From contig OZ260665.1 in assembly GCA_965285935.1 (NCBI GenBank), positions 14,384,001 through 14,448,000 of the forward strand: DNA of 64,000 nt, in the 5' to 3' direction. The notes under the pieces are model-generated. The model was not told where the DNA came from. It did not search any database and saw nothing but the letters and a program-made list of their open reading frames with translations. Within the stretch, counting starts at the first letter, position 1, and each line of letters begins with the position of its first letter. Position numbers and translations under genes: made by a program. The DNA is from Ophelia neglecta (Eukaryota). Shown piece after piece: positions 1 through 49,345 of this stretch.

Positions 1-957
1 AGCAGTCAACAAAAAGCCACGTACACACGACGTAGAGCAAGGGTGATTGTGTGGCTGATTCTGTGAGTGTTTTCTACTCCCGGTTATCTCAGGAAATTAG
101 ACACCAGACTGAAGAAATGTGCAAAATTCACATCAGATTGTAAACAGGGGAATAGAACGAGAACATACCCAAGGTATGTTCTTGTTATATACCTGTTTAA
201 TTAACAGTATTAGATATCTCTTCTGGGGCATTTCTGTAATAAAAGTCAATGCACTATGTGTTAGGTCAAGAAAGGTTATCCCACTCACTGAGATTGATGT
301 CGCACAAAGGCATATAATATGTTTTGCTTTTGCTGCGACAAGATTTTATTACACTTTATTATTAGACCACACGTGCAGAATGTAAACCCCAGCCTTGAAT
401 AAAATCAAACAGACAATTATAAGGGTTTATCCATTCAGCAGAATGTTTATATAACCGGGGAATAAAATAAACTACTACTACTAACACTATAACCAACGCA
501 TTATTAACCTCCTACTAGCATATAGCAACCTGCCAACATGTTTATATCTTTTGCCTGTGTGGCATAAACTGCGAGTTAGTGACGCACTGCAGAGATGGCT
601 CATCCCTGGGCAACATTCTTATGCAGATGGAACCAGCCAGTCTGGTTATGGTAACTTACTATGGTTAGGGCAAGGCATAGTTTTAGCAGTAGATTATACG
701 CTCAGTAGACGAAGACATAACCGTTTCCGACAGAAATATTTTTTAACATACACGTACTTCATACTGTATCTAAATTACTTGAAGACATATACAGCTTAAT
801 CTTATAGACATTCGTGAATCTTGTTGACTGGCTAACTGGAGTGAACCAGCCCGTATGCGGTGTATGCAGTGGTTGTTATAACACATTGTATGCAGTATTT
901 ACCATGGTGTAACTGGTTGTACAGTGTTAATCAGTCGTCGCAACCCTGACACTTTAC

Positions 958-2320
958 CCACCTGGGTGGAATCTTCTAAAGAGGCGCTCTTCGTCAGATC
1001 AGTGATAAAGTCAGGGGCGTTATCGTTAACATCAGTGATCTTGATGTTGACAACAGTAGTAGCAGTTCTTGATGGGGTCCCGCTGTCAGCACCGTGGACG
1101 GTCAGAGTGTAGAACTACAACAGAGAAAGACGCATGAACACTGACAACACCCAACATATTAATGCAGGACATTATTCCAGTGTCCTACAGCAGTCAGGAC
1201 GGCAAATGCTGGTATATCCATTGGATTTTGTGGCTAGCGAAATAGAAGTTGCTGCAGTAGGATTGATCTTTAGTTTGGTCAAGATCCAATGTGTACGCCC
1301 ACAATTGTGCTTTAATGTTGTTTTAGCAAATTAAGGAAGATGTATACAAATAATATGTATATATGTACCCATAGTTTAAAAATTCCTTATAATAACATAC
1401 CTAAAGAGGCACCAACATGTTATGGAAATACATTTTCGAAACATGACTTATAAAATTGGACAATGTCAAATTAAAGTTCACCATTAGACTTTTATATTTT
1501 AGTAATATTTATTTCTTTTTCTTGCCAGTTACTTTTCGGGTCCGTCTATGCCCGCATACTCCAGTTTTCATATCGTTTGCTTAGGCATTCCGCCATTGTT
1601 CATCTACGTTTTGTATTTTCTTAACTGTATTTAATTAGGATAAACTGGTTTATTTGCAATATGGTGCCTTACAAATCAATAAGTGGTCCCGGTGGAGAAT
1701 CATTCTGATGCAAAATAGACGTGATCGTTATTCAGGATTCGAAGAGGAATATTTATTTTACCTTACATACCTCTGATATGTTAACGCTTAAATGTAGGGC
1801 AGAGTAACCCAATTATATACAGTTGAGAAAGAACAAAATGTAGATGAACAATGTCGGAACGTCTTAGCATAATGATTTACTGATTTAGTAAAAGAAATAC
1901 CAAACGATATGGTTATTAGCTATATTCTAAATAGGTGTCACATTTCTTTTGCGATTTGTCAGCTTGACGCGCAATCTAAAAGGTTTTGGCGAAGTGCATT
2001 TAGCCTCTTGAAAAACCTAAATCAATTTTAGATATACACAAGCTCTATATATATGTTCTATTTTCGATAGAACTTGCCTCTGTTTCCTCCCTATCTACTG
2101 TTCCGCGCAGTCTCAGAGATCCAGTGAACTGCCCCAACGAAAACAAACCACCCATGTCGTCCAAAAGATTGTAGACGACAGTGTCCTGATCGGCGTCTGT
2201 GGCTTTTAATGTTAAAATATCAAGTGGAGGCATGGATGCTTCGCTCACTTCAACTGTGTTACTGGGGTTTGTGAATCGAGGACGATTCTGATTTGTCCTT
2301 ACAAAGGATATATCATAGTC
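958..2320 (-). CDS. Gene A: cadherin repeat and start of a second (exons 2078-2320, 958-1114)
   Basis: NQNRPRF...VEVSE...LKATDAD...VDREETE|FYTLTVHGADSGTP...ITDVNDNAPDF, the canonical cadherin Ca-binding motifs (DxD, DRE, DxNDNxPxF). Confidence 0.9.
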
Positions 2321-5300
2321 CTACAAAATAACATAGGCGGCATATTTAGTGAAATGCCCTTGCCACGAAGGATTCCTTCTATATACTCGGTTCAAGGCTT
2401 ATTGTTACTACCAATTAATATCTGGTCCGTACAAACTATTACAGTTTTATATCATTTGTATCATTTTGTATTATTTGAATTCAATTGTAGTCCTACAACA
2501 ACAAAACAACTGATGTTGGAATGTTGAACTGCTTACGATAATTAAGTTCTGTGGCAAATATTATCTTACATGTTCTCCTTCCGTCTCGAACAGGTCGAAT
2601 ATATGTAAATAATAATCCTTGTTAATTTCTGACACCCAACTGAAAGTAAACAGATTCCAAGAAGTCTATCATAATCTAAAAATGCAATGAAAAAAGCATC
2701 TCCATTACTGGTCGGATACTAAGTCATTAGAAGCTCAATTGAAATTAATCTAGTCATCCTGATTAGTGCGATTTATTGTTTTTTTTAAAAAAGGAAAATC
2801 TTGCTATTTAAGAACCATAAATATGTTGGATATTGGCATACACGTTAAATTCGGGGATGAGTTGTCGACCATCTTGCCTCAGGGCGCCCCCTACAGTCAG
2901 GGGTTGGTCTGTGTCGTATTTATAAAACATGTAGTTCCACCCTACTCGATGCTGCGTCACGAACGCCTATAATATAGATAATATAATATTAAACTTTTAA
3001 TAATATTTAATTTAAGTTTCATCGTAAGTCAATAGGTAAACCATGCAGTCGCTGCCAACATCGCAGATATTGGTAAAATTAGCAAACTTGATACCAAGTG
3101 GTACAAGGAACAACTTATTAAGTTGGTTTTTTCAAGTGAAGCCTATGAAATATAAAAACCAGGGGTGGCAAAGCGGGCCCGGTCTGCAACTGGGGTGATA
3201 TATCTCGAAGTATGCAACCCGTATATGCTCGGGAACTCAGAACATTGCTATCATGAATATAAACTTTACTATTGGAAAATCGAAATCATATCTATTGTCT
3301 AAAGACGTGAACTTCATTAATATGTATTTTCTTTTTGAAGACTATTATATCCAAATAGTAGCAACCATCAGATAGCTGCGATAACAGGCTTATTCTTCAT
3401 GTTGGTTTACTTACGGGGATACCCTTACCTTGATATATTGAGGTGTGCTTACCCTGATGTTTGTATACCTTACGGAATAAGCGGAGGTGATAGTGCTTAC
3501 CCTGATAGTGCTTACCCTGATGTTGGTAGTGCTTAGTGTCTCCAGCTTGGTAATATTACTGACACTAACGTTCAGAGGATCAAGGCCGCCGTCACTCAAA
3601 TAAACTCTGTTTGGAAGGCCCTGAAAACGACATATCCTGGTTATACTGGTTATATTAGAATCAAATTCATTAAACAGTATCCACTTCATTTTCACAAATG
3701 ATTGGACAACAAGTAATTACTTCAACCAGTATAGTTTATATGGACAGAAAATGATAATAGTTTTAAATTTCCCGTTTAAAATAATTAAAGCGCACGAATT
3801 AGTGTACGTGTTTACAACTCAAACGGAATCAATCCGGGTATATAAAGGGCATATCAAATTTGTTTGACTCCCTGAGTTTACGAGAAAAAAAACATATTCA
3901 AGATTGTCGCTTTATCCCATTATGATAATCAATTAAATAATGATGCTTCATTTTCATAAGGTTAATCCCAAATTATAGAAAATCTGTTCAAATGTTTTAA
4001 ACTATTGCTTTCTGGTTTTAATTAAGCTCTTGCAGTTGTTGCACCAAGTAATGTAAATCATTGTTTGAATAAAATCCAATTTGTATTGTCGTGCGCCTCT
4101 CCTTCTCTTAGTAGTAACCAGACACGATGCAGTCATTTCTCGTACCCAAATCTGGGTTACTGCGATGCCTTGCCCGACAGTTAGCTACGTAAGCGTATTT
4201 TTGAAATACTAGAAAACAATTTCGGGCTATGGATAATAGTTGCCTGAAATGGCTAGTAGTATATTCCTGTAAAACAGACTGCTTTTTGGGAATGGCAAAG
4301 GCCACAGGTCGTTAACAGTAACAATGTAGACTAGATGACAGTATGAAGAGCCTTGATGCAAGCCTAGCAAAAGGTTGACACTTTATAATATGTGAAATAC
4401 ATTCCGGAGTGGCAGCTTTTCTCAGAAATTAATTGATCGAAATGGTGATTTATTTTGTGTTGGTCGTTATGTTTGGTTTCAGTAACGAGAATAAGCCAAA
4501 CTCAATTACAAGTTTACATCCGATATCAAATTATATATATAAAATACATGTTAATGTTTACAGATTCCCATTTGATCTGGTATCCCTCACCAATGATAAT
4601 ATCAGAAATTGCTTGACCAAACCACCTATTATATTAGTATTTACGATATGCTGCAGTATTTTCCATACTACTTCATATACCGCATCAGAAAGGTGGGCCA
4701 TCGATATGGGCATATTTGAAATTTTTCAGACGTAACTATCACTGAACGAAAAATCATTGAGCGTTCATATATATTTAGTTTTGCGTCGAAATAATAATTC
4801 AAACACAAGACATCTTTTTTCTCAGGGTTAACGGTTTAACTACTTTCACTGGCCCTTGACTAGCCAGGTTTGTAATGTATGCATGTAAGAATACCTGAAG
4901 TCCTTGGGTGTCGATTGTCAGGAAGTCAGGCACTCCATCATCCCGAGGTTTGTCCACACGTACCACGTGTGACAGCTCGTGGAAGTTCACAGACTCCATT
5001 ATGGACAACTGATGATCTCCTTCATGGAACAGTAAAATGTATGTTATGGTCACGTGACTCAAACGTCATGCAATGTTCGATCAACGGAATTGTAACATGA
5101 ACGTATAGAATCGTGGAAATAAAAGAAGAACTTCTCTATTGCATTGATTAACAGGATCACATACATCTTCATTATTTGCATGGTGATAAATATGCACGCA
5201 AATAATGTGAGGTAGGATTGATGGAACCAAACCGAAATTAATGTATATAATGCTAGGACAAATCCATCAGCAACCGAATATAAAAATTCTGTTTTTCATT

Positions 5301-8300
5301 ACCGAGAGGATTGACATTTTCGAAAGAGGCTGAATAGTTAGAGAAAGTCCCTCGGAGTGATGACGTCATTAGCCAACGTGCCATCTTCGTAGTAAAAGGG
5401 TCAATGTCTCCGAAGTTGATTGTGAGTGAGGGTGATAATTGCTTAGATCCAAGCTGGGAGGATATCAGTTTGAAATTGATCAGGAGTCCTACAAGAGGAT
5501 AGTGAACAAGATGAACAAAGATAGAGCCGGCAAATACATTATTGTACCGAATATTATACACACATATACACCATTAATGTTAAGCCTAAACGAAATGCTG
5601 ACGTGTGGTTTGGAACCGTTATTAGCAACAGCATCAGTATTTACTTGGGCCAACAAATATGTATAATATTATTTACGAAATACGTTGGTATGCATTTTAA
5701 TTTTGTATATGCAACAAGTAAAACACTTATACACTGCCGTATGTGTGTGGACCATATTACGCATTACATAGTGCTAACGTAAATATAAAAATCTGCAGGA
5801 CCCCTGTAATAAAGAGAAGGCTGAAAGTCGAGGTCCATATATCTCAGCACCTGGCGGCTTGCAGACAGTCTCTGCTAGTAGCCGCTGCACATCTGTGGCG
5901 TGCTATTTAATACATCGTCATTTTAGACAGGAAGACATTAATACTGGCATGGTCTAACTTAGGATTACACACGACTTGTTATTATAGTCATTATTTAGAT
6001 AATATAGTGCAAAACACACTTTCCTTATAACCTACCCTTCTCATTTTCTACGATGGTCGGTTGCCCGGATGTGATTTTCAGTTGGTTGGCAGACCCATAT
6101 CCGGTGTTTGTTATGAGGATTCCAAGAGAAAACGGCACTGGCGGTTCTATATCTGAAACGTATATATTTAGCCATGTACCAGTGGATTATATGAATGCGA
6201 ATATATTCATTAGTTTGAACTTCGTTTTAACACATTTCAGATTGATCTGAAACGTATATATCAAGCCATGTACCAGTGGATTATATGAATGCGAATATAT
6301 TCATTAGTTTGAACTTCAGAACGAGTGCATATTGTAAGAATGTATACAAATGGATACAAACTCCATCAATATAATAAGAGGTAAACATGCGCATTTAAAT
6401 CGTAGCTACCGTCTGTGAATGGATTGTCTGATCGGACGTATTTCTCCAGAAAGTAGTTCAGATGCAATCGTGGATCTGGTTTGACAGTTACCTGTCAATA
6501 TAAAATATGGCGCGCCTTTATAAATGTTACTTTAAACTTAATAAGTAACATAATAAGTAATATTCTTATTGACGAATGATCAACCAGATACAGTGTTGGC
6601 GCATTTTTAAATGAAGCATTGGTCAGGATCTGTCTACATGCTCGAATTGCACTAATTAATATAACAGACTAATCACGTGAAATATAATAAATCGTTTTTA
6701 CCGTGTCGGGAAAAAGAGGGACGCTGATTTCATTTCCATCTACTGAGTAGAGTAGAGTCCCTCCGATGGCGTACTCCACGTCCTTGCTGGGAGCAGCCTC
6801 AGAGTAAGGTACGATAAGCCACACGGCTGTACCCTTCTCTTTGACCTCTAGCACGCCCGTGCCGTCCACTCCTGAAAGTCCTGTGAGCTTGGGATTTCCT
6901 GCAGATCAAACCAAAGCCTGTTATTTATTTAAACATATGTTATTTCCTTTAGGAAGGAAACGCATCATACATAATTCCTGAGATCTTTTCTTTCCGGTTA
7001 GCCAATAGTAAACTTAACATTTCTTCTTAGCAGTTTTTCTTTTCCACAGTATAATTGGGATCTACTTGTATTCCGTTAATCATAGAGTAAACACTAACTT
7101 TAGCTTAGACACATAAATCACAAATAGGCAAGATGTGTTTTGCATGCTACGACGAAAATATATTTGAATATCATTTTCTTTTCACCCGCTGAATGTCGAG
7201 GCTACCTCATAGGCAATGAAACCCAGTTTGTCGAGTTGCTTAACTTCCTCATAAATAACATTTTTGAGCACGTGGGTAGTGAGGTGTTTCTGCAAACTAT
7301 TGGTTTTCTAAATGGGTACCAACTGCCCTCATTTGATTGCAGTTTTGCATCTATTTACATACGAATATGATTTTATTACTAGTTTGCTGCCGGGTAGGAA
7401 ATTGCTCATAACTAGGAATGTTCTTCAATGAGTTATATAGATGATTTATTTTCATTTAATAACAAATTCTTCAGGCAATATGTTAGTGAAATTCACCATT
7501 TTTAGAACTCAAATGTAGATCGCATTCTAGCATTATTTTTGTTGTCCAGCGACGTTGGTTTTTAGTTTGACTCGTATCATGATAAATTGCTTTCAATTCG
7601 AAAGTGGTTACAAGTTTTGTTCAATTGTTCGTTCCTTTCAACAAATGGTTTGAGCATCATTGGATGATATTGGTATAAATGCATACCGGCTCGAACAACA
7701 TAATATATGGGTGAATAAATGACCTATTTCGTTTAAATTAAAAAAATACAAAGGCTATGCTGCCATATTATAGCAACAGCCTCTCGTTTGATCCGCCTTA
7801 GAACACAAACTATTAGACAGAAATGTATACACGAGGTAGCAATTACATGCCTTTGTAGCATTATTAGGATGCCTCGACAATGGACAGTTTTAAAACTTTG
7901 AGACGTGTCCGTTTGTATTATTAGTGGCCCGGCAAAAGTAAAGAAAACGATGTGCATATACTGTCCAAAACCAACCCTATTGAAAACTCATTGCTCAGCT
8001 GGCTGGGACCTATGTTTCGCGGACGGAGCACCTCGTAAACATATACAACTTATATTGAAGAGCCCGCTGTGGAAAGATATGATGCGTATCAATTGCAGTA
8101 AAAGTCCAACCTTCTTACCAATACTAAATTTCTCTGTGGCTATCTCTTTGGATTCTTCGTCTTTGATGTAGATCTCCACTTTGATGCCATCTAACCTTGA
8201 CGTATCGCCGTTATCGAGCTCCAATGTCGCCTCAAACGCTTCTCGAGTAATGACTAGGCGCTGTTTAATTTGTATCCGAACTTTTGCACATACACCTTCC

Positions 8301-11300
8301 TCCTTCTGAATGGCAAAATAGTATACTAAATAATAGTAGAAATGATTTCGTTTGCTTTGTAGTTTATGACCAAATGAGTACGATGCCTACCTAGTTCTAC
8401 TCTAACAAAAATCACTCACCAGTTCAGCACGGTTAAACTTATTGATAGCATCTCCCACCCAGTCTGCCGCTGAGGAAAAGCCATCCTATAAAAATAGATT
8501 CCTTTCGAAGTGAAAAGACAACCATTAACCAGCAAAATTCGCAAGTTTCATGCATTCCTTACGAAGCATAACTAGGAATAGGAAATAACTTTTGTTCCTA
8601 TTCGGCAAAGGACTTTATTTTCGAAAAGAAAGGGAAACTATCACACGGCAGAATAAACATTCGAATGGTACGAAATTATTACACTTGGTGCAATGATTCG
8701 CTAAATGTTTCTGCAAGCGAAAGATTTTTGTTTAATTTAAAAGGTTACTAGGCAAATAAGTCATGTCTTTAGATGTACTATCGGCCTAATTATGACTTAT
8801 CTAACCTGTTGGGCGCTTGCTTCCGCTATCTGGATCATCAAATTCAGCTTGGAGATTTCAGAATGACTGATAATGTCTGGCCCCTCTAGCACACCATTGT
8901 CCCAACTCCATTGTGTGCGGTTCAACCTTTATCAATAGCAAAGTATAAAGTATATTAATAACAGTAGAAATGACAGTAGAAATGATTTCGTTTCGCAATT
9001 TTTTAAGGCGCGCAGTAATGGCAGTATCGCAGTTGGTTTTGAAAATTCAAAGGAAATTAATAATCAAATTGTTATTTTATCAGTTAGTTCGAAACCTCGT
9101 GATAAAGGTTTCCACCATATCCTTATCAGTTCCGTTAGGGGCTGGATACTGAAGTATTGAGTTCATCTCTGATTGGCTGATATACACTCCGCCCTCACTG
9201 GCGTCTGATATGGTTGGTGTCACAGCGGCATTCCACCACTCCGGAGACTCAACCTCAGCCCTGACATAATGACAAAAGATATGAACGAGTCAGAATAAAA
9301 CTCCAATCTAACTCATTAGAGATACACAGGCCATTCTCGCTCACAGCTTTAGATTTGTCGGCCGAACAATCTAAGATACATTTAAGATACCAAGTTATCA
9401 TGACAGAACGTTTCGAACTATTCTTGCTGATTAATATTGTTGACACGCGATAAGGTGCATAACTACTGTGGCAAATTGCTTGTGTGTCCATGTTACAATT
9501 ACTCGCCCCCCCCCCCTTATTTCTTACCATCTAGAGTCGCCTGCTATCAGTAGGGCCTTGTGCAGGTAAACACTGGAGATAATAATCCGTTTTCTGACCT
9601 CGGGGACAAGGTCAGCCTGAGTCAGTTGTGTCTGACGCTTCCTTCGTTGTCCCGAGTTCAACTTATTCAAACAGTCGTTCAGTTTGATAAGGGAACAGAC
9701 CGGCCGCAATCTAGGTATGGGGTTTTCAGTTCGATTAGCAGCTTAGAGAGTCATAATTCATCAGTTGATAATTACATACATTTACGCTGTTTTTGGACAG
9801 TAGTTATTAGCCAGATTAAGAACATGGATGTCATTAGAGCCACTGACTAAGGAATATTCTATATTATGATATGTCTGGTTATCATTGATCGATGAAGGCG
9901 CCAACACCTTAAAAACTTTCAAGAAGCTGGCAAGCGTTATTATTTGGCTATGAGGCAAATCATACATTTGTCGATTTCATGTATGCAATAAGTGTACTTA
10001 AGATCATGCTGATTCAGGGATATAAAAAGAATTGATTAATAAATGTACCACAATCTAGTTTTCTATGTATTCCCCATTCTAGCCTGACTTAGCGGTTATG
10101 CAAGTTAAACTGATGGACAGAAAGTTAGAATAGAATAAAGTTTGAACCACGCCTTTGGACCCTAAACTCCAGCTTTCAATTCCATTTAAATGCCATGCTC
10201 CAACGCGTAATAAAAAGCTTATGGAGGCTTAACTAATTTTGGTTAAAAATAGCCAACGATAATCATTTTATTCTGGTGACATATGATATGTTTTGATATA
10301 AAACTAGTCCGACCTAGGACACAACTTACACGCAAACATGAGCGATTTCATTTCATACATTTCTTAGTTATGGCACTTACGGCAATATATAGGTAAGGGG
10401 GTCTTTGACATCTGGGACAAGACATTGCCAAACAGCACTCTCTGCACATTCCGTCTCATCAGGAACGAAACATTTCAGTACAGAGTGGACGCAACTAAAA
10501 AACGTAGAACGTCATATTGCTAATTCGTAAATAACAGATGAGTTAGCATTATCAAAGTAGTTATAAATTTCTACTAACTAATAATGTGATTATGTGCACT
10601 TTTTTATACTACAACACCTTAGATTACCCCTTATGACTTCTACATCAGCAAATATCGCAGCTTTATTTTCCCGCCGTTGCTTATTACGGCAATAATAATA
10701 CTTACCCAAAAATGGATGCTGGTGGAAAGAAACAGCCGACAATGCTCTCGGCAGCTCCCAACGGGTCATTGCTGCCGACCGACCCTGCCACTGGTACGAA
10801 ACACTTAAGCCCCGGGGGCAGACCAAGGGAGCCACAGCTCAACACGATTGGAAGGCAGTTTTCACATGTTATTGGCTGATCCACATGAACCTTTGGTCTC
10901 CAATTGGGACCTCCACAACAGCCTACAATATGTTTTAGTCAGATGACTATGAGTCTAGGCAAAGTACAGTTTCACTGTGATAAGATGTATATCACTGCCA
11001 ATCGTTAGAAGAAAAAAATATACAATGTTTCCTGTCCTTTAACTTACCTAAACAAAAATACCCTACCTCAAAATTCTTATTTACATTTCCTTCAATTTAT
11101 GAAACATTGTCTAATTTTGAGTCCTGACCGGAATAGTATGTCTCCCTTAACTGTAGCCACAGTCTTCAGTGACAAAGCACATTAAACACATGAAACACCG
11201 AACAATGGACACTATTCACCAAAAAATATATAGAAAACTTTTAACTGTATAAAGCTTAATGCACTATCATACTGTCTATGTCCGGCCCTCCATCACCGCC

Positions 11301-14300
11301 TCCATGTTGTTCCGGACGGACATCATGTGGCGTCACTTTACACGTCCGTTTTATAGCGTCGTAGATAGCGACATCCATTTCAACCGCCCTCTCTCTGTCG
11401 CACAGATAAGAAAACCCCGCGTACAGGGCAAGTGCCAGACATGGGAGGCTGAAATGAATGAAATATGACATATGCTATTTAGTCCAAACTATTTCCAGTG
11501 GATTAGGAAATACAATGTTGTTTGTTTCATATGAGCTGAGTACATACACTGACTAAACGCAGGTGGCGAATTGAACCCATTTGACTTCAGTTTCTATACA
11601 TCTAACTATACTAGAATTAAACCCATCCCATTGATCGGGTGGTGGAGTAATAGGTCTAACACTGCAAAAACGATAGTAATGTTTAGTTCTAATGTCATTT
11701 GATGTGAATATTTGATCAAAATAAGAGTTTACACACAAAGAACGTTTCCTGCGCCCAGGTTCAGTTCCTGTATGTTTAGCAATGTAAGCGTCCTTTTTAT
11801 TCTGGTCCAAGGTAACCAACACAGGGACGTGAATAGTCGAGTTAGCGGCCAAATCACCAATTGGATCGGGGTCCTTTAATCAACAAATGTATATATCAGA
11901 CAACTTTCGCCCTTTTAAATTGGCCACTGATATCTTGCGACTCTTCAGTTGAGTGTCCTTCTATAGTTGGACCATTAATTAATATTATCTTGACATCTGG
12001 TTTTGTATTGTTTGCTTATCCATTCGTGTTCTTTAACAAGTGTGTACTCCTACTCGACATTTTTCTTTTGAAGATATCTTAAAAAGGAAAGTTTTTAATC
12101 GATTGTTCCTACGGTAAAGTGAAAGTAGCAAGAAATAAAACAATATATTATCATTTGTATTTGTTTCTAAGTCGTTCATTAATCCATATGATTACTGACC
12201 ATTGAGAATGAAAGATACGGATGAGCTTCGTCGAGAGGCGGTTTCAAATACACGTTATTTGCTTTAATCAAGCCGTGATTGGTCAGTTTAAAATTAATGA
12301 TTGGCATCAAGCCTCTCTCGAGGACCGAGAGATCCACCTCCTTGGGATCTATGGTAACGACGGGGATGGGAACCTGTGTCTTAAAATCGGCTTCTATTGT
12401 CACATCATAACGATCCTCGAATATAACTGGCTTCACAGACCATCTGAAATAAATCATGCTTGTACTTTCAGTTCTTATTACTTTAATGAAAGCAATGTTA
12501 CTGTAATATCGATTTCGTTGTCATATGACTTAGACAGTTTTGCATGATTGGTAAAGTCTCAACACTGGCTAGGTTGATGTAGGAATTTAACGCTTGGACA
12601 ATGAATGATTTAATTTGCAACCTGTACGTCACAGCCGTCCTTTGCAGGAAGACAGTCACCCTGTTGGCCAGGGGCCGTGCGAACACCACCCTGCTGTCAC
12701 CCGTATGACGATCGGCAGAACTGTACAGGTTGTAGTAGTTCTCCGTGATGCCCTCAAACACAACGAAACCTGATTCATTGGAATATTAGATGAAATGAGA
12801 TTAGAATATACCTTACCATTACAACGGAAATAAGGGAACTAGACTGTGGTTGTTTAGTGTCCGTGAGCTCAGGATGTTTAAGAAAGTGCCGTAGTGTGTT
12901 CATAACTAAAGGGTAACATTAAACATTGTTCTATTTATGAACATATATATGTATATAATCCCATTATGTTAAAAGATCAAAAGTGATTAGCGTTAATTGG
13001 TGTGTTTGTTTTAATTGAGCCAGAAAAGCACTTAAACTTAAACCAGTCTTTCTATTTAACCTTTTTAATAATGTCATTCCATTGCTATATAGATTACAAG
13101 TCTTTATATATTACAACACTGTTATTTACACTCTTGGGTATAGCTTTGAGGTAGTATTTACCAAAGGTATGTTCACAGTACAAATTGGCAATTGGCACGT
13201 TCTTTGTCACATGATTCGCAATGTGCAAAAGTTTGAAAGATTCACCTTTCATCACGTTTAATATTCATGAATTATAATAAATGTTGCCTAAGTGCTTGCT
13301 TTCAGTCAATCATTACATTCAACATATTACGGTCGTCTGCTGTCATTTGTCTGTTGGTACGACTGTCGAGTATTCGATGCGAGGAGAGTGTATAGCCTAC
13401 CAGACGCATTGGTGACACGTTCCAAAGTTCCGCCACCAAAGGCGTTTTTAAGTTTGACTGTGGCGCCCTCTAGGAAGGGTTTGTCTTCGGCGAAGTATGT
13501 GTACTCGTCTTCTATGTACACAATGAGGTCTAGAACACTGGTCGAAGCTACCACAAATCTGGTACAAAAGTTAATGGGAAATATTTAAACAACTATACAA
13601 GGTAGAAGCTAATAATGCATCATATAAACCACGAAAATCGGCGCAATGGACCTTGCTCTCTTTGAACGAACTATTACAAAAAGGTATTATTTATGATAAA
13701 CAGACACTCAGTCTATGTTCCAATTGTCAACACAGTGTTGCTCACCGAACCGTTGCTATATTAACATACGTACACATAGTTTAGTGCGACCCACGTCTCA
13801 GCTGCTCGAATACCAATTCTGCCCGATAAGGATTCCAGTTGGCGTTTTGGGTCGGGGGTAAGCCCAAATACCAATTGGGCTGTATCACCGGGTTGGAGAA
13901 TGATATCTTCATCAACCTCTGATGTCACACCAAATGATATGACGGAGAACATAGGATCTGAAGGTAGCTCTACGTGAACCCCCGTGGCAGGCCGCTGACC
14001 GACATTCTGAACTTGGGCCTATATTGGAAAAAGCACTGATAAGTGGTACGACAAGTAGTATAGTTTAGTATAATGCAATTAGCATTGTTAATAATTGATT
14101 GTATACATAGCTGAGGGTTCCTGGTGTTTTGGACCCTTTGTTTCTGATCTCGTTCCTTTTAAATTAGTTGATTTTATGTTTTAAACAAGCTAGTTATAGA
14201 GACGGTGGTTGATAATGTGTGTATGACGTGCTTACACTGTAAACACTTACAGTGAATGTGCGAGAGGATCCCCTTAGAACAGTGCCTGATATCCGAGTCG

Positions 14301-17300
14301 GTTTTACCTTCAACGCTGGTCGTTTGACTTTAAATTCAAAGTCTACCCGACATTTTTCAAACACTCCTCCTTTTGTTGTCAGTGATATGTAGAACATTCC
14401 TCTACTAGGGGCTTGCACTGACGATATAATACAAATCTTTATATATAGGGAAAACAGTCATGCCAATGTCTTAGTGTATATTAATGAGCATTCAATAATA
14501 ATGTTTTAATGGATTATTCAATGCCCATAAATAGTAGTCTCAGCCTTAAAATCATAATTGTATTAGCAATTTTCCCGAAAGTAGTATTTGACCATGCAAT
14601 TGTTGTTTTGTTCTTGGTTTACCTCGAACGGTAAGTGTAAGCTGAATCTCTTCCGATGCAATCATTTGATCTCGGAGCAAACAGTCTCCACGTTCCAATA
14701 AACAGTGAGGTGACGTAACATTTGTTTCCCATAAAAGTATGTCCATCGCTTCCAGTTCCGGTATCCTCTGTATGATTCATTCCAATAATGAAGTTTGCAA
14801 TACTTTGACGAGACCAAACATCGAAACGTTTCATATATTTTGAATATTAGTTTAATAGCGCTGACTACCTACCTGAGCAATGACCTTCAACACAGCGTCA
14901 TTACCAACATTGGTGACCTTGAGATTTGTAGAGAAAGACGTCTGATCTACAAACCCAGTCAGAGATATATAGGAGGGCTTAAAGCGCATACCAAGCACGG
15001 ACCACTGTATCTGAGGGGAGAAACCCGAGTCACGGGGATGCCGTGCGTCCTATAAATATAAAGCAAGAATATCCACACAATAGCTAGCAAAATACACAAA
15101 TTCAAAACCGCTCATATGACCAGTCGTTTAGGTCGTTTATCGCACAGCATGGTCATTTGTGGACAACTTATCTTTCCTAGGGGTATTATATGATAGGTAT
15201 CTTTAATCTAATTATCATTCATAGAATTTGGTACTAGTTCCAAACGTATTAGCATGTATAAATTTTATGATTAAGGTAGAAATTTTGGACGGATGCCCTT
15301 TGTCTTAAGCATTGAGTGTTCAGGAGTAAGTAACATTCCACATATAATGCAAATTGGAATAATTGACTATTCAAAAAAAAATATAGTAGTGTACAGGTAC
15401 TGTTATCTATAATAGCCTTATAAATAAAAAGAATGTTCCAACTTACAGCTTTAAACACTCCATATTCATTTTGTGAAGGGAAGAACCGAGTATAAAATAT
15501 TCCTGTTCCGGGCATGGATTTCACATTGAGCGTCCTTACCGCTTTATTGGAATGGATTCTGAAATTTGGTGTAAGTCAGGTTCAATTATAAATGAGTTGA
15601 CGTCCTATGGTTAATACACATAAGAATCAAAGCATCTGTACATCCAATGCGTCATCCTTAGACCCGCCATATATGCGGCTAAATTGACCGGCTTAATGAT
15701 AAATTGCAATTTGTTTGATACGTGTTTTTCTGTGCTCTGACTATAAAGAAAGAGTGGGCAAAAAACCCTATTCAGAAGTTGTGGCTATATAGTTATGCTT
15801 TATAATTATGCACATCCTATCTCTGCTCGTTCCGTGATCAAAATTCCTCATGAAATAGACTGTACTTATGTTAACTGACAACATATGAGCTGTACAGATT
15901 TATATCTGGCCAGGGATAGAGTAAACAATATTCAGTAGATTGGTTTTATTAACTGTTCATATATATACCGACCCTCTCCTTTTATTTCTCATTTTGTTTT
16001 TCATATAACCGACCGACTCAGTATAATTTTGATATACCTTATTACAACTGGCACTTTGGACTGTTGTAGATCCTCTGCTGCATTGTCAAAAACAACTCTT
16101 CCACTGATCAGCATTGGCAAAGCCTTCGGATATGGCCCCGGAAGCACGCCATCTAGTGTCACGTGATAAGTGAGCGGTACGTTGAGTTTGAAGGTCATCT
16201 CATCCTTGCCGTAGGTGTTCTTACACGTGACTGTAAGAGTGTACGGTCGCTCCGACGCCACTGCATGTGGCCAGTGGACCATTCCTGCGTCGTTCATGGT
16301 CATGCCTGAGGGGTTGCCTGACAGACGCCAAATCACGGGTTGCTGACCCTAAATCATACATTCAAAGGGTTTATATGGAACAAAATACAATTTTAAGTCA
16401 GTTCGACATTAACTGTGCAAAGACCACTATACAATGTATCAAAAATAGATAGCTGACCTCTGCCAGGTAAAGTTGCAAAGTGAATTCACTCCTCTCCATC
16501 GCCTCGAGGGTAGTGACTGGTGTTATGACTGGTGGCAGACCAACCTCGGAGCAGCTGTCTCCTCTCCAGGGTTTAATACAGACACATCTTCCCTTAGAGC
16601 AAACTCCTCTCTGGGGAACCTCTCTTGACCCGCAGGCGCTCTCAGGGCAAAGCGCGTAGTACTCATAATACACCTACATGTAAATATCAATGCATTAGAA
16701 TGTTACCTTGACCACATATAGTCTATTTTATTCATAGGTCATGCTAGTTTGTCCTCACAAAGTATGGGGAATTTCTGAAACATCTTCATCTGTCAGGTGT
16801 ACCCCTGGACGCTTCCTTTGATTTGCCGGTTTCACGACTGTGATATGTTACCAGCTGGATGCAAGGTTGCGATTAGTTTTTCAATTTTGCTTTTTCATAT
16901 GCTCATTTACAGTGACTGAATGATGTTTATCATACAAATTCTTAAACAGTACAACCAACAGCGAAATCGACCCACTGATTGGAGGTGGAATAAAAATCAT
17001 GGTTGTTGCAAATAATTTATTGTTAGGGTCTGGCTTGTGTTAGTGGTTAAGGTTCGCATGCGGCACATTGATTTTACAACATTTTAAAAAGACTGCCATA
17101 GGCTAAAATCGTGAGTTTTGCTAGAGATAGTTGTAGGAAGAATGTTGTCAAAATGACATCCGCTGTCGTAGTAATCATCGGACGAGGGACTTATGACCTT
17201 GAATACCTCTAGTACATGTTAATCCACTTGGATTGATCACTCAACATCATACATCAGTCACGTCCTCTGGACAGGGGTTTGAGACTTAACTTAACTAGAC

Positions 17301-20300
17301 CACTGTTGTGCTAGGAACACACTTTTCTTGATCAGACTAATGACGATAATGATGTTACTACCTTTTCATTGGTGAATGGTAAACCAAGGCCAGACGATAC
17401 TGACACCCTGACCCGACCTGGATTATTCTCAGGGGCGCGGCAGACTATCTCCTCTTTCGACTGCCATTCAGCAGGGACTTCATCGTTGTTAAATCTGAGA
17501 AGATTGTTTAACATTATAGTTTTACAGCTAAATAACATGTGGAAACAGCGGCTTGGGCTTCACTTTATTTCTATTTCTACCTAACACCGGGTAATATAGT
17601 AGCAAAATGGCAATATCGGCCTTTCCTACATGTCCTACTTGTATCATTGCGCAAAACTATTTTCCAATGCTATCATAGCTTTTTTTCCACAATAACTGCT
17701 ATTGTGGAAAAAAGGAAATTTTATTTGTACCAGCCTTCTTGCATTTGGGCTCAAATGGATAATTACCTACCAAATTATTTGAAAAAAACTGAGTCTTGAC
17801 TGTAAGAACACAGCACTTTGAAAGCCGATTTAAGGTCGTTATTATTATGACCTTGTCCGTTCATTGCACGTACCTGCATCTATATTGCGATGAGCTGGGA
17901 AAGTTATGACCGAACACGTGTACCAGGTTTCCTCCTGTATCCGGGCCTCTTTCGGGGGTTACGAATAATACCTGGATGCATCGATCATAATCGTTTTATT
18001 TGTTTGGTCATATACCAATTGGAAGTACATGTAGTTGGCTTTAATCATAATTTTAATTATAAACTTGTATTGTTATTTGTAAGGAAGAGTAGTTACTTCA
18101 ATTGATGTCATAAAAAATGTATTAAGTGTAGATTTTCTTCACCCATATTTACCTTGGTAAAGGGTTATTTTTTTACTAAATTTTATTTTCCATATTTAAA
18201 CTTCGGGCTACATCGAATTAATACAAGTTACATCATATGATCCATAACATAAGTAACCTTGGTAAAGGGTTGACACGTTGGTCCGTAAAACGTCTCAGCA
18301 CATTCCGAACATTGATCCCCAGCCCAGTTGGCCTCTGAACACACGCAAACTCCTGATTCAAATAAACACATTACGGTGTACGATTTTTTTCCATTAACTC
18401 GCCAAAGTTCAAGAAGGTTACTACACAGATAACATGAGTTGTAAAGAGATGAAATCAAAACATTTAAAACGAGTCAAAGTGACAAAAGCTCTCGAGTAAT
18501 GTGTGAAAAGGAATAATGTGAATATGGCATAGAGCTGTGTAGTTTATTTTGTTAGAATACGTATGGGTTGAATTTGCATTCCATGTGTCAGTGTCCAATA
18601 TCATCATTTCATTCTTATAGCACTAGCTTTTTCATCTGATAACATGAAGAATTGACTGATTTGATATCACTTACGTTGAGAAGTAATCAAATATTGTATT
18701 TGTAATGTTTTCCACACGTGGATTAATTTTATTCTACTAACAAGTATTTCTTATAAAACATTTTAGATACCTGAGTTAGGGTGACAGAATCCATTCACAC
18801 ATTCAGGGCAGGCTAAACACAATGGACCCCAGCGATCTTCGGCACAATTATCACAAGCCTCACCGCCAAATCCCTCGTAACAGTAACACCTGACGAAAAC
18901 AAAGTTATACTCAGCACCACTATGTAAGATATGGCGCCCGAAGTATCCTTATATGAACCACTTAGCACCACCCATATATTGCTAGTTGAATGCCTTAAAA
19001 GGCTGCTTTGTGGTACTGCTTTTCCGATTATTAAGCACTGTGCTAAAATTAAAGGCAATAGTAATGTTAAACTAATGGTATATTGTTTCACCAATACTGT
19101 TCTGTAGTTTATGCTCATGTTAATCAACAAACGACAATAAAATCGATTTAATTTAAACAGGAATCATGACTAATATTTCATATAATGTTTTAATAAACAA
19201 TGCTAAATTGCATAATCTTTTATTGGTGGTGTTGATTATATGTGATCAGCTTTGCTCACATTATATCATTCACTCAGGTGACATGGCGGCTACCAGCTAC
19301 ATAATTTGGATTCTATGAACTAACGGTAAGATTAAAAAAGAATCAAATGCTATTAAAACTGAATTTGCTATTCTGTGTCTTTGTGGCAAGGGTGACCATG
19401 GGCAAAAACTTTAGATAGGTAATGTTTTATACCTGTCAGGTGATACACAAACTCCATTTAAACTGCAGTTTTTCCTGTTGTAACACGTTGGTTTGGAGCA
19501 GTCCGGCGGTAGCCATCCCGGTTGACATTGGCAAACATTAGGGGCTACACAGTCTCCATTACCTTGACATTCATACATCTTAGCGCAAGACACCTATGAG
19601 CATAATAAGTCCACTAGCGTGTGATGATGTAAACAACATCATCAACCAAAACATATAATATACACAAATTTACCGCCACCATATTTCGTAATGTAACCAT
19701 TTGCTTGTAAACCCATGCTTGATTCATCCCAATATGTATTCAATTTAAGTGCGATCAAACTTACAGTTCCACAGTCCGCCCCGGCCCAGCCCTCGTGACA
19801 GACACACACATCAGGTCTCCTGCAATCTCCGTGTGCACTGCAATTGTTAACATTGTGACACGATACTTCAGGAGATTTCAAGGGGTCGGTCCAAGTCACG
19901 GTACCCACCTGTGGGTCATCCGCATTGTCAAAAATTCTATTCTACAAGATTTGAATGGAAAACACAATGTTAGGGCAACCGATGATTATATGACAAACAA
20001 ATACATGTATGATTAACGGTATATGAGATGTTACACATGTTCTAACAATCAAGAGAATGCATTTCATACTGAACGATTTAATAAGAAAATTTAGTTTCTG
20101 CAATTATAGCATTCAATTTTGGCACCGAGCGGTTTATATTCTGGATTAACGCATTATCTGTGTCTGTCGGATATTCACACCCGTTTTATTAAGTCAAACA
20201 ATCGTAAATTTTCATTTCAACCTAAAATTTACAGTCAATAAGTTAACGACTGTGTAACTTACAGCGTTAGCCGAAGAAAACACATTTGTATTAAACCATC

Positions 20301-23300
20301 TAATAAGTATCAGAAAAAATCCAGAACTTTTTATACATTATTTGATTTAAATTAACACGTTTTACCGGAATCAGAGCTTCATCACTAGTGCCCCACCAGT
20401 TGTTTGGACACATCAAGGTATTATCGCTCATGGCAAAGGTTGCTTTGACATCGAATTTACTCAGAGGATTAATAAAGATATTCCTACAAAAGAACGCAAA
20501 GGCACAAGTGATATATTCTAAAATGAAAACCCGTTTTGACAGAAAACCCTTGACTATCATTATTTCTTTAAGGATACCTGCGGCATTTGAATGCGTTGGT
20601 TGAACAAACTATAGCACTTATGCAATATAAACACACTTGCTATGTGATGTGGAACAGAACAGCGAAAGTAATACGCGCCAGAATAACAGAGTAGGTTTAG
20701 AGTATAACCGGTTAACAGTAGATATATGAGCTGCCAAAGAACAAATGCACAAATACAGAGAAATAAACAAACACCGGATGGAGCAATTTTATAATTCCCA
20801 CCTCTCTAAAAGCACAGCCACCGCCATCGAATTTTAGCTTTAGCAGACAAACATGCATTGGCATATATTCAGAAAAATTGCTGGATGGTAAAAAACTATG
20901 TGTTCTTAAATAATAATTTCTCATTTTGGTTCACCATTAAAGCCTACCTTTCTACTGTGGCCCTGTAGGTTTGCGTTTGCAAAACGGCCGCCGTGGCCCA
21001 GTTACCCGTGAACAGGTTTCCAGACACTTTGATGTATGGACTTCCTTCTGCCAATACACGACTATCGATCTACAAATATTAATCCAAAGATAACGTAGCA
21101 AAAATACCTTAACCCAAGAAAAAAAATTTGAAATTCTGTGTGGGTATAAACCTTGTTTCAAGCATGTATTAAATCAAGTAGCTATTATACTGAGTGTAGC
21201 CTGATGTCTGTTTCAACATCAAGGCATATAACGTAAAGTTCTGGGGATACATTATTTGCAATCGGATTAAAACAAAGATAAACACCTCCGATTGTCATTG
21301 TTTACCTGAAGTATGGACGTCCCTTCATTTTTGTTGAAGTCGTTGGTTTCAATACTAAGTTTATTTTCACTGTGGCTATTCCCAAAAGAAGATATGATAC
21401 CAACGCAACCGTCATGATATGTGTTGTTGTAGAAAGTGTTGTTCCTTATCGTGATGTCTACGTTATCAACACTTTTCAACACAATAGCAGATCTAGTCGA
21501 GTTAGCGAAAACATTGGAGAGCACCTATAAAAGAACACGGTACAATGAGAAACGAAATGAGATAGCCAAGAACATTATTCGGCGTATAACATATTATGTG
21601 GGCTTAAAGTACAGGTATTCGACGAAACTTACAGAAGGGGAGGCTTTGGCGAATGGGTCTGATGTATGGGGGTGGGGGGGGGGGGGGGGGGGGTGGTGTT
21701 GTTTAGATGACTTAACTCATAATGAACTACACCGCATAGTTTAAAGTACTAACCGATAGTACATTTCCCCTGCCATAGGTCGTACTGTACACTTCCAGAC
21801 ATTCATACATGTTTTCTGACCAAGTGTTAAACTCTACATTAACTACAGAGTCAATTCCATATATTTTCAAGTATACGGACTTTCCAGTTAGAGTTCCAAA
21901 GAATCTGTCGATTGATATGATAACGAAATCTTACAACAACGATTTGATCAATATGTTCATTTGCGAACAAAGACGTGTGCAAATATATGTGGAAACTGAC
22001 ATAATACAATAAGTTTCACCATAAAAGCTGTTATAATTTACTCGTTAATTCTCAACGGATATCAGACTTATGTTATTATATGTACGGCTGCAAACAAACT
22101 GGCCACGGCTTATCAGGTATCCAGGTGGCCTAATGCACAACTAAATGGTTCTTCTATATTGATCTCATTTTAAACTAACCTGTTATGACTAAGGTGTAAA
22201 ACCGCGCTATCTTGCGTGCGTATATCAATGGCATTAGTCTTGCTGTGTTGGAATACACATCTGGCGATACTGATGTCCGTTACACCGACCAGGATAATGC
22301 CATTCGTTTTATAGAAGGAGCAGTCTTCCACAGTTAGGTTAGTGTGCAAATTTAAGTAGTTGGTCATAAACACTGCTTGTTCACTAATATCTGTGAAACT
22401 AGAAATTATTATGTATTAGATATTTATAACCTAATACACAGGGCAAGATCACAAGGACGAATTTGAGTGCAAACCAAGAGCATCATGGGTTGGACAGCGT
22501 GAAGTGCAAAAGCGCTGATAAAATATAATATGAAAATTCACTACGAAAAATAAATAATGGCCCACAATATTTTGCTGTCATTTCCAATAAAAAAAGTTAG
22601 TCTTGGATGAATTTGACAATGACTGCAGCTTATTGGGTTGACATAAAAACATTAATACATCCAAAACTAAGCGAGGTCTCGTAGAAATACAAGTGGCAAC
22701 GCAAACTGTTACAAATGAAAAGGGTTCTAAAATGTTTATACTATTTCACTGCGTATTGAGAAAAAAACTGTAACCTGTTTACCTTGAGTTTTTTACCACC
22801 AGTCGCCCGATTTTATTGAAGTTAATAGCCTTGCCAGATGTGGCATTGAAAAATAACGAGTCTGTGACAGACAGTGCAACACCTTCATCCATCAGCTTCA
22901 TTGCATCATGACGGAAGTGACGAATTATCAGGCGTGACAAATTAAGTTGTCCACTTCCGTAAACTTGTATAGCATCATTTTTCATACGTTCCAGTATGAC
23001 ATTTTCAAATCTGCAACATTCGCACTCTATAAAGAAAACACATTTAGATTACAAGTAGCATTCATGTTGTCTTTCGCCACTCTTTTAACATAATTAAGCT
23101 TGTTGTCGCCAGAGTCAATCGAGTGTTCCAAAAAGGTTGAAATGTGATGCAAAATTAACACAAGACACATGAATTATATCATTCATGTGGTTTTGCCACT
23201 GCACGTGGATACCCTCTCCAATGATTGGTGGTATTTCCTGGCTTGTGGGGACCTCATTTGGAGTTGGCACTATTGGTTCAAATGGTAAAACAGAAAGCGT

Positions 23301-48139: not shown

Positions 48140-48237
48140 CTCCTATACTTAATGTTTACGTGTACGTTATTTAACTTTTAATTGAAATAAACCATCTAGA
48201 AGCTTCGCGTCAGTTGTTAAAGCAGGAGTGATTAACA

Positions 48238-48440
48238 ATCCCCCTCCCCTTTCCCCTACCATCCACCCCACCATCCCCTTCCCCTTCCATCCACCCCACC
48301 ATCCCCTTCCCCTTCCATCCACCCCACCATCCCCTGCACCCTTGCCTCCACCCCACCATCCCCTTCAACATCCATCCACCCCACCATCCCCTGCACCCTT
48401 GCCTCCATCCGTTGCTACCCCATCCCCTCCTCTACCGCCC
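48238..48440. repeat. C-rich ~28-bp tandem repeat (G-rich on the minus strand)
   Basis: CCATCCACCCCACCATCCCCTTCCCCTT repeated with variants. Confidence 0.85.
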
Positions 48441-48504
48441 TGTAAGAAGAATCAAACAATATAATGGTAGTGTATCGTAAGCCGGTGGATCTCCACCAAA
48501 TAAT

Positions 48505-48785
48505 CTTGCAATACACCAAAAATAATAGATAGCAATACACCAGAAATAGCTGATAGCAATACACCAAAAATAATAGATAGCAATACACCAGAAATAGCTG
48601 ATAGCAATACACCAAAAATAGCTGATAGCAATAAACCAAAAATAACTGATAGCAATACACCAAAAATAAGGGATAGCAATACTTTAGAAATAGCTGATAG
48701 CAAAACACCAAAAACCAAAAATAACGGATAGCAATACACCAAATATAACTTAAAGCAATACACCAAAAATAACTTAAAGCAATAC
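48505..48785. repeat. AT-rich 24-bp minisatellite, about 11 copies
   Basis: Unit CAATACACCA(A/G)AAATA(GCT/ATA)GATAG; source of the spurious LVYCYQLF ORFs. Confidence 0.9.
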
Positions 48786-48957
48786 CTTCACACATACCTC
48801 GGTACGCACTTTTTCATGTTTTTTTTCACAGATCCAAGTTAACTCGGAGAACATTTCTACTTTATAGCATAGATGCTCTGATGTACAAGTCTTGCCGGTA
48901 CCTTCATGACATCGAGCCTCCCCAAACAGTGCCGCTGGGGGGGGGGGGGGGGGGCAC

Positions 48958-49345
48958 CGAATACAGAGACAGCGTTCACAAACAGTATGGCATAGCGACG
49001 TCGAATACAGGGAGGGCGTCCCCAAACAGGGCAGCAGGGCGACGTCCAATACGGAGAGGGCTTCCGCAAACAGAGCGGCAGGACGGCGCCGAATACGGAA
49101 AGGGCGTCCCCAAACAGAGCGGCAGGGCGGCGACGAATACGGGTGGGCGTCAACAAACAGCGCGGCAGGGCGGTGCCGAATACGGGTAGGATGTCCCCAT
49201 ACAGCGCGGCAGGGCGGTGCCGAATACGGGAAGGGCGTCCCCATACAGCGCGGCAGGGCGGTGCCGAATACGGGTAGGGCGTCCACAAACTGCGCGGCAG
49301 GGCGGCGCCGAATACAGAGAGAGCGTTCCAAAACAGCGCGGCAAG
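48958..49345. repeat. GC-rich 44-bp minisatellite, about 9 copies
   Basis: Unit CGAATACGGGAAGGGCGTCCCCATACAGCGCGGCAGGGCGGTGC; about 4 degenerate inverted copies at 45348-45540. Confidence 0.9.

Follow-up and report, generated by a model that had tools for sequence, protein, structure and literature searches.

An intron-rich gene predicted in Ophelia neglecta carries a module homologous to the core of giant bacterial surface proteins

Teneurins are metazoan receptors that derive from bacterial YD/Rhs toxins (PMC3278476, PMC6425310, bioRxiv 10.1101/2025.11.11.687626). A locus that invites comparison with them lies in the genome of Ophelia neglecta (assembly GCA_965285935.1, contig OZ260665.1). 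The stretch analysed here, referred to as the window, comprises the 64,000 nucleotides from position 14,384,001 to 14,448,000 of this contig. Positions 2564 to 16348 of its minus strand are, judged by their conservation, part of a real, selectively constrained and intron-rich animal gene. The module predicted from these exons is, by sequence comparison, homologous end to end to the core module of rare, giant surface or secreted proteins of bacteria, and the phylogenetic evidence favours a single old transfer from bacteria to eukaryotes.

In a preliminary description of the window, nine motifs distributed over ~27 exons had been ascribed to such a module. Every one of them was found in a stop-free frame of the minus strand, where it had been placed: EDEYTYF in frame 13330-13584, TQVPIPVVTIDP and LTNHGLIKA in 12200-12443, VCAKVRIQIKQ..TREAFEATL in 8120-8305, DNPFT in 6408-6494, IEPPVPFSLG in 6028-6156 (together with QPTIVENEKG, which is continued by LLINF in 5292-5489), ARWLMTSSLRG in 5292-5489, and HELSHVV and DGVPDFL in 4889-5032. 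The number of exons between 16348 and 2564 is 26 according to paralog conservation. The motif series had been attributed to giant bacterial proteins with CARDB, He_PIG and Calx-beta domains. A large family of this kind does exist: 232 bacterial loci were confirmed, and all motifs occur, slightly varied, in the bacterial consensus. The Cys-rich variable stretch, which had been expected at a similar position in bacteria, is located at the same position in this family.

Searches, alignments and trees were run on single exons. A profile hidden Markov model (HMM) built from 46 bacterial modules was run on every stop-free frame of the window (2,387 on both strands together) and yielded 16 matches with an independent E-value (i-E) <1. 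All of them lie on the minus strand, and their order is strictly colinear (profile 199 to 1368, window 15046 to 2835); the best i-E values are 4e-29, 4e-26 and 1.5e-23. No match was found elsewhere in the 64-kb window. A chance result is excluded by this strict colinearity and by the lack of off-target matches.

The conserved block of the bacterial proteins comprises ~1,325 residues (1925-3250 in the numbering of the bacterial locus L084) and consists of an N-half of ~500 amino acids, a less conserved Cys-rich centre of 300-430 amino acids with conserved Cys residues, and a C-half of ~400 amino acids. Both halves are present, in the same order and 300-430 residues apart, in 119 of the 120 proteins examined. 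In the window, seven exons of the N-half match profile positions 199-639 in order and end in the domain with the VP.PVVT / TNHGLI motifs. Eight exons of the C-half, which in bacteria opens with the motif GVCA.V.I.I.Q...R.AF.A.L...N, match positions 991-1368. Within the centre, only 9092-9250 matches the bacterial profile (869-921, i-E 6e-4). In 71 bacterial sequences, 65 columns of the C-half are at least 90% conserved; the window covers 52 of these and is identical at 49. Comparison of the window with the proteins of Paraflavitalea, Calothrix, Sedimentisphaerales and the bacterial protein P0028 by means of tblastn gave colinear matches with 37-74% identity per exon. The colinear profile matches and the conserved columns indicate that homology spans the whole module and is not a likeness of generic Ig-like repeats.

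NCBIfam has no model for the module, and neither Pfam nor NCBIfam has one for the last N-half domain, the centre or the C-half. No window exon reached the gathering cut-off of Pfam CARDB (PF07705) when scanned singly, a procedure that loses power; the bacterial homologues score CARDB at the equivalent place. A description of the module was not found in the literature.

The window is located within an 85.8-Mb contig of a 762-Mb genome, its GC content is even (36-40%), and introns with GT-AG borders could be read in the sequence. Two paralogs of the gene are found on the same contig, at 13.70 and 14.31 Mb, and a second animal lineage (loci L004 and L005) possesses two tandem copies. All copies have the order EGF, He_PIG and module in common, followed by cadherin where the locus reaches that far. 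The intron positions are mostly common to both animal lineages; L004 lacks two of the window's introns. The ratio of nonsynonymous to synonymous substitutions (dN/dS), calculated from summed per-exon Nei-Gojobori counts, is 0.11 for paralog 2 and 0.17 for paralog 3. Given these low values and a dS >1, the duplicates are old and constrained. Paralog 3 (L095 and L096; 14311240-14324000, plus strand) is probably decaying; it contains a TAG inside one C-half exon, and 11 of the 40 conserved residues covered are changed. One exon of the window stands out in the comparison with this copy: 6696-6896 is 94% identical to its counterpart (L096:4159-4356), with a proportion of synonymous differences (pS) of 0.18, compared to 48-84% identity and a pS of ~0.4-0.8 for the neighbouring exons. 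The pattern resembles local gene conversion; the two copies are separated by 70 kb.

The predicted exons of the module and its flanks are as follows; profile positions refer to the bacterial HMM.

16437..16673 (scanned piece 16401-16673), minus strand: EGF exon (DUF7949 / teneurin-type EGF) directly upstream of the module; Pfam DUF7949 29 bits, EGF_Teneurin 25 bits; kept in both paralogs and L004.
16034..16348 (scanned piece 16004-16348), minus strand: He_PIG-like (putative Ig) exon; Pfam He_PIG E 9e-4, sub-threshold.
15435..15560, minus strand: short exon, no family match; tblastn 43-72% identity; kept in the paralogs and L004.
14858..15049, minus strand: N-half exon, profile 199-256, at the place of the bacterial CARDB domain; HMM i-E 1e-3; kept in the paralogs.
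14600..14770, minus strand: N-half exon seen through paralog conservation only; tblastn 47-48% identity to both paralogs.
14236..14427, minus strand: N-half exon, profile 286-349; HMM i-E 6e-5.
13764..14018, minus strand: N-half exon, profile 346-423, NEW3/CARDB-like sandwich; HMM i-E 3e-7; bacterial NPCBM_assoc at the equivalent place.
13390..13575, minus strand: N-half exon, profile 420-477, CarboxypepD_reg-like, with EDEYTYF; HMM i-E 8e-11; weak Pfam CarboxypepD_reg match.
12600..12782, minus strand: N-half exon, profile 470-528; HMM i-E 1e-7.
12200..12443, minus strand: exon A, the last N-half sandwich (with TQVPIPVVTIDP and LTNHGLIKA), profile 520-593; AG acceptor and GT donor read in the sequence; HMM i-E 4e-26.
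11766..11873, minus strand: exon closing the N-half and opening the centre, profile 605-639, ending in dibasic RRKRS; HMM i-E 0.03.
8417..11462, minus strand: variable Cys-rich centre, seven exons (11340-11462, 10705-10923, 10380-10502, 9527-9712, 9083-9271, 8800-8928, 8417-8485), ~350 amino acids; kept in the paralogs.
8120..8305, minus strand: C-half exon 1 (VCAKVRIQIKQ..TREAFEATL), profile 991-1053, retaining the residues C, Q, R and N that are invariant in bacteria; splice sites read in the sequence; HMM i-E 5e-22.
6696..6902, minus strand: C-half exon 2, profile 1055-1121; HMM i-E 1.5e-23.
6408..6494, minus strand: C-half exon 3 (DNPFT), profile 1119-1146; HMM i-E 9e-10.
6028..6156, minus strand: C-half exon 4 (IEPPVPFSLG .. 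ENEKG), profile 1146-1186; HMM i-E 6e-19.
5292..5489, minus strand: C-half exon 5 (LLINF .. ARWLMTSSLRG), profile 1186-1251; HMM i-E 4e-29.
4889..5032, minus strand: C-half exon 6 (HELSHVV, DGVPDFL), profile 1248-1291; HMM i-E 8e-13.
3441..3626, minus strand: C-half exon 7, profile 1289-1342, weak match; HMM i-E 0.08; 70-76% identity to the paralogs.
2835..2966, minus strand: C-half exon 8, profile 1329-1368, weak but colinear match; HMM i-E 0.2; 62-84% identity to the paralogs.
2564..2647, minus strand: linker exon between module and cadherin repeats; kept in both paralogs.
953..2320 (2075-2320 and 953-1114; scanned pieces 2048-2320 and 902-1114), minus strand: downstream cadherin-repeat exons, Pfam Cadherin, same order in both paralogs; the gene runs off the window.
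17335..41559, minus strand: upstream exons with Pfam matches, namely TIG 17335-17559, EGFs 18231-19941, many parallel beta-helix exons 21270-39130, SRCR 31602-31841 and F5/8 type C 41224-41559.

Scanned exon by exon, the window is recognised by Pfam in the flanks only, and the region from ~15050 down to 2800 has no family match. The cadherin repeat at 2048-2320 scores 28.8 bits at a Pfam cut-off of 28.8, and the second cadherin exon is partial. The upstream TIG, EGF, beta-helix, SRCR and F5/8 type C exons most likely belong to the same giant gene and would be read from a single transcript. The fusion to metazoan EGF, cadherin and SRCR domains in a fully intronised gene, as proposed in the preliminary description, is borne out by the intron-rich arrangement with EGF, TIG, SRCR, F5/8 type C and cadherin exons. 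The He_PIG domain just upstream of the module needs a separate reading; it may be part of the transferred piece and not a metazoan addition. The corresponding exon is 30-47% identical to the He_PIG repeats that precede the module in the bacterial L084, L059 and P0028.

Some further features of the window were noticed. A minus-strand frame at 56889-57212, ~57 kb upstream of the window's low end, has a Met and, after it, a hydrophobic stretch resembling a signal peptide; the giant gene may start here, and F5/8-C-like frames follow at 55309-56079. Judged by eye from their translation, long minus-strand frames at 28774-29718 and 53500-54078 resemble reverse transcriptases or retroelements in introns of the giant gene. 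At 48186-49540, a low-complexity Pro-/Arg-rich repeat region that is rich in G+C (44%) leaves several frames open on both strands. Finally, the minus strand at 62439-63770 contains a Trp-/Cys-rich frame that resembles thrombospondin type 1 repeats (without a Pfam match) and a Ser/Thr/Pro-rich mucin-like frame; both may be part of a neighbouring gene.

In order to survey the bacterial family, one genome per bacterial or archaeal species was scanned with exon A aligned to eukaryotic exon-sized relatives. From the confirmed loci, 80 were kept, which are 38-52% identical to exon A, except for L006 with 62%. They bear 12 phylum labels, chiefly Verrucomicrobiota, Pseudomonadota, Planctomycetota, Bacteroidota, Armatimonadota and Cyanobacteriota. 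Two of the 80 were set aside. L006 (CBDHHR010000748.1) is filed as a metagenome-assembled genome (MAG) of Metamycoplasmataceae; its contig carries the animal form with introns and is therefore host contamination. L025 (JAWABC010000105.1), a 2.8-kb contig with a bacterial-type module in a MAG labelled Nanoarchaeia, is probably mis-binned. The remaining 78 loci are labelled with 10 bacterial phyla. Among the isolate genomes containing the module are those of Calothrix, Paraflavitalea, Variovorax, Cellvibrio, Haloferula, Botryobacter, Methylomonas and Chitinolyticbacter.

The bacterial genes encode proteins of 2,000-5,000 residues that are decorated with CARDB, He_PIG, Calx-beta, RTX, PKD, cadherin-like, Ig and FN3 domains, and sometimes with a subtilase or dockerin. 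Two protein searches yielded 694 and 839 matches to giant "hypothetical" proteins, and those listed were all of bacterial type. Full-length eukaryotic proteins were not among the matches listed for either query (a bacterial C-half, and an alignment weighted towards eukaryotes but headed by a long bacterial row, with 8,000 candidates scored), which does not show their absence. The family is sparse: in evenly sampled genomes, with centre genomes not counted, it was present in 1 of 80 Verrucomicrobiota, 0 of 150 Pseudomonadota and 3 of 80 Planctomycetota, and its frequency within a phylum ranges from 0 to 4% of the sampled species. Bacterial phyla are intermixed in both phylogenetic trees described below. 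On account of this intermixing and the sparse occurrence, the module behaves as a mobile accessory gene.

Many bacteria encode the module as two polypeptides that are split in the centre, and stand-alone C-half proteins of ~680 residues are common among the bacterial matches. For example, on a chromosome of Armatimonadota (L011, 11494-11512), the ATG of the C-half gene overlaps the TGA of the N-half gene by 19 bases, and the same overlapping two-gene layout is found in L016. Because of this overlap, the split is considered real (translational coupling) and not a frameshift error. In all six loci tested from Comamonadaceae (three from Variovorax and one from Ramlibacter) and Cellvibrionaceae (two), a gene for an Rhs-repeat polymorphic toxin of 1,400-1,770 residues lies between the genes for the two halves and is followed downstream by small open reading frames (ORFs). 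The positions are as follows.

L072:11275-16467, L083:11238-15803, L068:10234-15276, L031:11237-15832, L026:7703-11938, L037:10699-14961: Rhs genes between the N-half and C-half genes.

The Rhs protein of Variovorax W6 (L072) contains PT-HINT and Ntox21 domains. In Methylomonas (L043), rhodanese and transglutaminase-like ORFs are found between the halves instead of Rhs. The intervening Rhs proteins were compared with the centre and with the window, and no similarity was found; their N-terminal parts match nothing in the window. The coexistence of single-chain and two-gene forms suggests that the halves work together around the intervening part. In four animal copies, a conserved dibasic sequence stands at the end of the last N-half exon; it reads RRKRS in the window, RGKRS in paralog 2, AKRS in L004 and SKRS in L006. 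The first two fit the furin consensus. This may be a proprotein-convertase site at the boundary between N-half and centre, and cleavage at it would reproduce the two-polypeptide form of bacteria.

For phylogenetic analysis, a tree of exon A (207 rows, 79 columns) and one of the C-half (86 rows, 412 columns) were calculated; the eukaryotic exons of the latter were placed by hmmalign and form fragment rows of their own. In each tree, all 15 eukaryotic rows fall on one side of a branch, with support values of the SH-like approximate likelihood-ratio test (SH-aLRT) of 94 for exon A and 98 for the C-half. The eukaryotic copies also have substitutions in common at otherwise conserved positions, namely H258N in all four groups covering it and D157N in three. 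By these measures, the eukaryotic sequences are one clade. Its stem has a length of 0.48 and 0.34, respectively, and is not longer than ordinary bacterial branches; the mean root-to-tip depth is equal (1.02 vs 1.03), and the midpoint root lies among bacteria. Each region on its own places the clade, with weak support (29-66), beside one and the same mixture of Verrucomicrobiota, Lentisphaerota, Gamma- and Betaproteobacteria, and P0028. Comamonadaceae and Cellvibrionaceae are both in this nearest set. No bacterial protein resembles the window more closely than P0028, which is 54-74% identical to it in several C-half exons and has a He_PIG domain immediately before the module, as in the animal gene. 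The direction from bacteria to eukaryotes is well supported, and these trees, together with the sparse occurrence of the family, favour one old event. The preliminary description had anticipated animal sequences nested in a bacterial tree; a single eukaryotic clade among bacteria was obtained, whose attachment is too weakly supported, in a tree without a root, to prove nesting.

The AlphaFold2 model of a bacterial C-half, based on an alignment of 59 sequences, has a predicted local distance difference test (pLDDT) score of 86 and a predicted TM-score (pTM) of 0.81; it is entirely beta and consists of three to four Ig-like sandwiches. The model of the centre has an overall pLDDT of 68, with a poor Cys-rich first part and a well-modelled helical bundle in the last 170 residues. 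In our best reading, the module is composed of an N-half of about five beta-sandwiches (CARDB-like, NEW3-like, CarboxypepD_reg-like, and a PapD/ASH-like last one), a variable centre that is helical and rich in Cys, and a C-half with another three to four beta-sandwiches, at the start of which stands the best conserved motif. When PDB sequences were searched with profiles, there was nothing for the C-half and only the generic SdrD-B and NOMO for the N-half; exon A gave only weak HYDIN/ASH-like leads in a protein atlas (score <=0.86).

Two more specific identities were tried and rejected. A zinc metalloprotease of the HExxH type comes to mind because HEL[SI]H is largely conserved, and Pfam gave a hint of DUF2268 below the cut-off (E 0.09). 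The sequence is located in a beta-strand (residues 270-282) of the confident all-beta model, so it is not a metalloprotease motif. A thioester protein was considered in view of CREQ in L084. This is not conserved across the family, which leaves no thioester signature, and the model of the centre has no match to a thioester domain.

Taken as a whole, we consider it rather probable that a real animal gene with ~26 exons encodes a bacterial module of ~1,300 residues, which goes back to one old transfer and serves as a scaffold. A segment of a bacterial gene, probably together with the He_PIG domain that lies before the module, would have entered a eukaryotic lineage once, long ago. It would then have gained introns, have been fused with EGF, TIG, SRCR, F5/8 type C and cadherin exons, and have been duplicated. 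The two conserved halves could make up a rigid scaffold outside the cell from which the variable centre is held out, and this centre would confer specificity on a giant receptor for adhesion or recognition. A proprotein convertase may cut the animal protein at the dibasic site, at the point where many bacteria split the module in two. Several observations weigh against this explanation. Support for a sister group of the eukaryotic clade is poor (29-66), and the tree is unrooted. The clade has a deep branch formed by P0011 (identical to L086) and P0012, which come from intron-poor genomes; on the contigs of P0012, which are 330-800 kb in length, a Complex1_LYR gene and a long gene for a cytosolic carboxypeptidase are found. 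An atlas cluster with the same fold and features is labelled 50% Eukaryota, with Prasinodermophyta as the commonest label, from two labelled members only. The fold of the C-half matches only generic sandwich stalks in Foldseek and VIA-align (integrin alpha legs, pilins, antigen I/II, MG7 and adaptin ears; top Z 9.1), and the model of the centre has no PDB match with E <= 0.001. As the folds are generic, the centre lacks a fold match and no function is attached to the bacterial members, the scaffold role is a reasoned guess. Moreover, splicing and expression of the gene are deduced from conservation.

The deep intron-poor branch and the atlas cluster imply that the acquisition may predate animals, or that the family is wider in eukaryotes. 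The domestication in animals postulated in the preliminary description holds insofar as a bacterial module is found in an animal gene; it may date the event too late, because the clade includes an intron-poor, possibly non-animal eukaryote and the atlas hints at a green-algal member. Carried further, this leads to a module that is old and widespread in eukaryotes, either passed down vertically from an early eukaryote and lost many times, or gained well before animals arose. To this alternative we assign a minor but appreciable probability. The order EGF, He_PIG and module already exists, without introns, in L086 of the deep branch, and rooting on the eukaryotic stem would be compatible with it. 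On the other hand, about five eukaryotic lineages turned up compared to hundreds of bacterial ones, the eukaryotic stem is short relative to bacterial diversity, the atlas label comes from two members, and the intermixed bacterial phyla show that the family moves horizontally.

A transfer in the reverse direction, in which bacteria took up a eukaryotic or animal extracellular module that then spread, would account for the eukaryote-like cadherin, I-set Ig, FN3 and C-type lectin domains of bacterial members. It is nevertheless very improbable, because the single eukaryotic clade is surrounded by bacterial sequences of far greater diversity, the fetched loci represent at least 10 bacterial phyla, including free-living soil and water isolates, and the split two-gene and Rhs-linked forms occur in bacteria only. 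Still further down the scale is an artefact, be it bacterial contamination, an assembly chimera or a chance likeness of generic Ig-like repeats, to which we give practically no credence. The contig mixture in the public MAG L006 illustrates that such errors happen, but in the opposite sense. The 26 short exons with GT-AG introns lie on an 85.8-Mb contig between animal EGF and cadherin exons of the same orientation, GC content stays at 36-40% throughout, three diverged paralogs are under purifying selection, and 16 colinear matches with E-values down to 4e-29 stand against none off-target.

Beyond the explanation preferred here, that of one old transfer with a scaffold function, a bolder proposal can be made. 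The module might be a conserved carrier, made of two parts, of a bacterial surface system not described so far. Its N-half and C-half would come together to present or deliver a variable central cargo, in place of which some lineages have a separately encoded Rhs toxin. Eukaryotes would have domesticated this carrier once, in parallel to teneurins, and obtained a family of giant receptors for recognition that are cut at the dibasic site into the same two pieces. We put this forward tentatively and regard it as rather unlikely. Irrespective of it, a nameless module of ~1,300 residues that occurs in at least 10 bacterial phyla, without a family model or known function, deserves attention. Its single-chain, two-gene and Rhs-linked bacterial forms offer a direct experimental route to its function, and the animal paralogs allow for a test of its reuse in cell adhesion or recognition.

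Compared to known systems, the module shows partial likeness to several. The proteins that Foldseek ranks highest for the C-half model (integrin alpha legs, Gram-positive pilins and antigen I/II stalks) likewise consist of serial Ig-like sandwiches that make up a stalk; with TM-scores of 0.1-0.2 and 6-13% identity, only the general arrangement is common. Alpha-2-macroglobulin (A2M) and C3 are similar in length and likewise consist of MG-like sandwiches, a helical domain and more sandwiches; weak Pfam hints of bMG3 and MG2 and the presence of MG7 of C3/C4/C5/A2M among the structural matches point in the same direction. In contrast to these proteins, the module has no conserved CxEQ, and the Z-scores tie with those of many unrelated sandwiches. 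On present evidence, it is therefore not a member of the A2M/C3 family. The giant bacterial repeat adhesins with CARDB, He_PIG, Calx-beta, cadherin-like and Big domains are the same host proteins; they have the same domain vocabulary and all-beta Ig-like arrays, and are probably extracellular. Unlike their variable strings of repeats, the module is a fixed, non-repetitive unit of ~1,300 residues that occurs once per protein and is 45-55% identical across phyla.

Teneurins differ from the protein described here in that the conserved part of the latter is formed by beta-sandwich arrays with a Cys-rich and helical centre, which is a different protein family; no module exon matches a YD shell, NHL, FN-plug or toxin domain (RHS and TEN_YD-shell included). 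The parallels concern architecture and history. In both cases, a large bacterial extracellular module follows teneurin-type EGF repeats in a giant animal surface protein, one old transfer from bacteria to eukaryotes is deduced, and the bacterial relatives bear the same variable decorations (CARDB, CarboxypepD, PKD, He_PIG/CADG). Furthermore, the halves of the module flank an Rhs/YD toxin gene in six bacterial loci. If the explanation favoured here is true, the gene would be a second large, teneurin-like case of an animal receptor built in part from a bacterial surface or toxin-associated protein.

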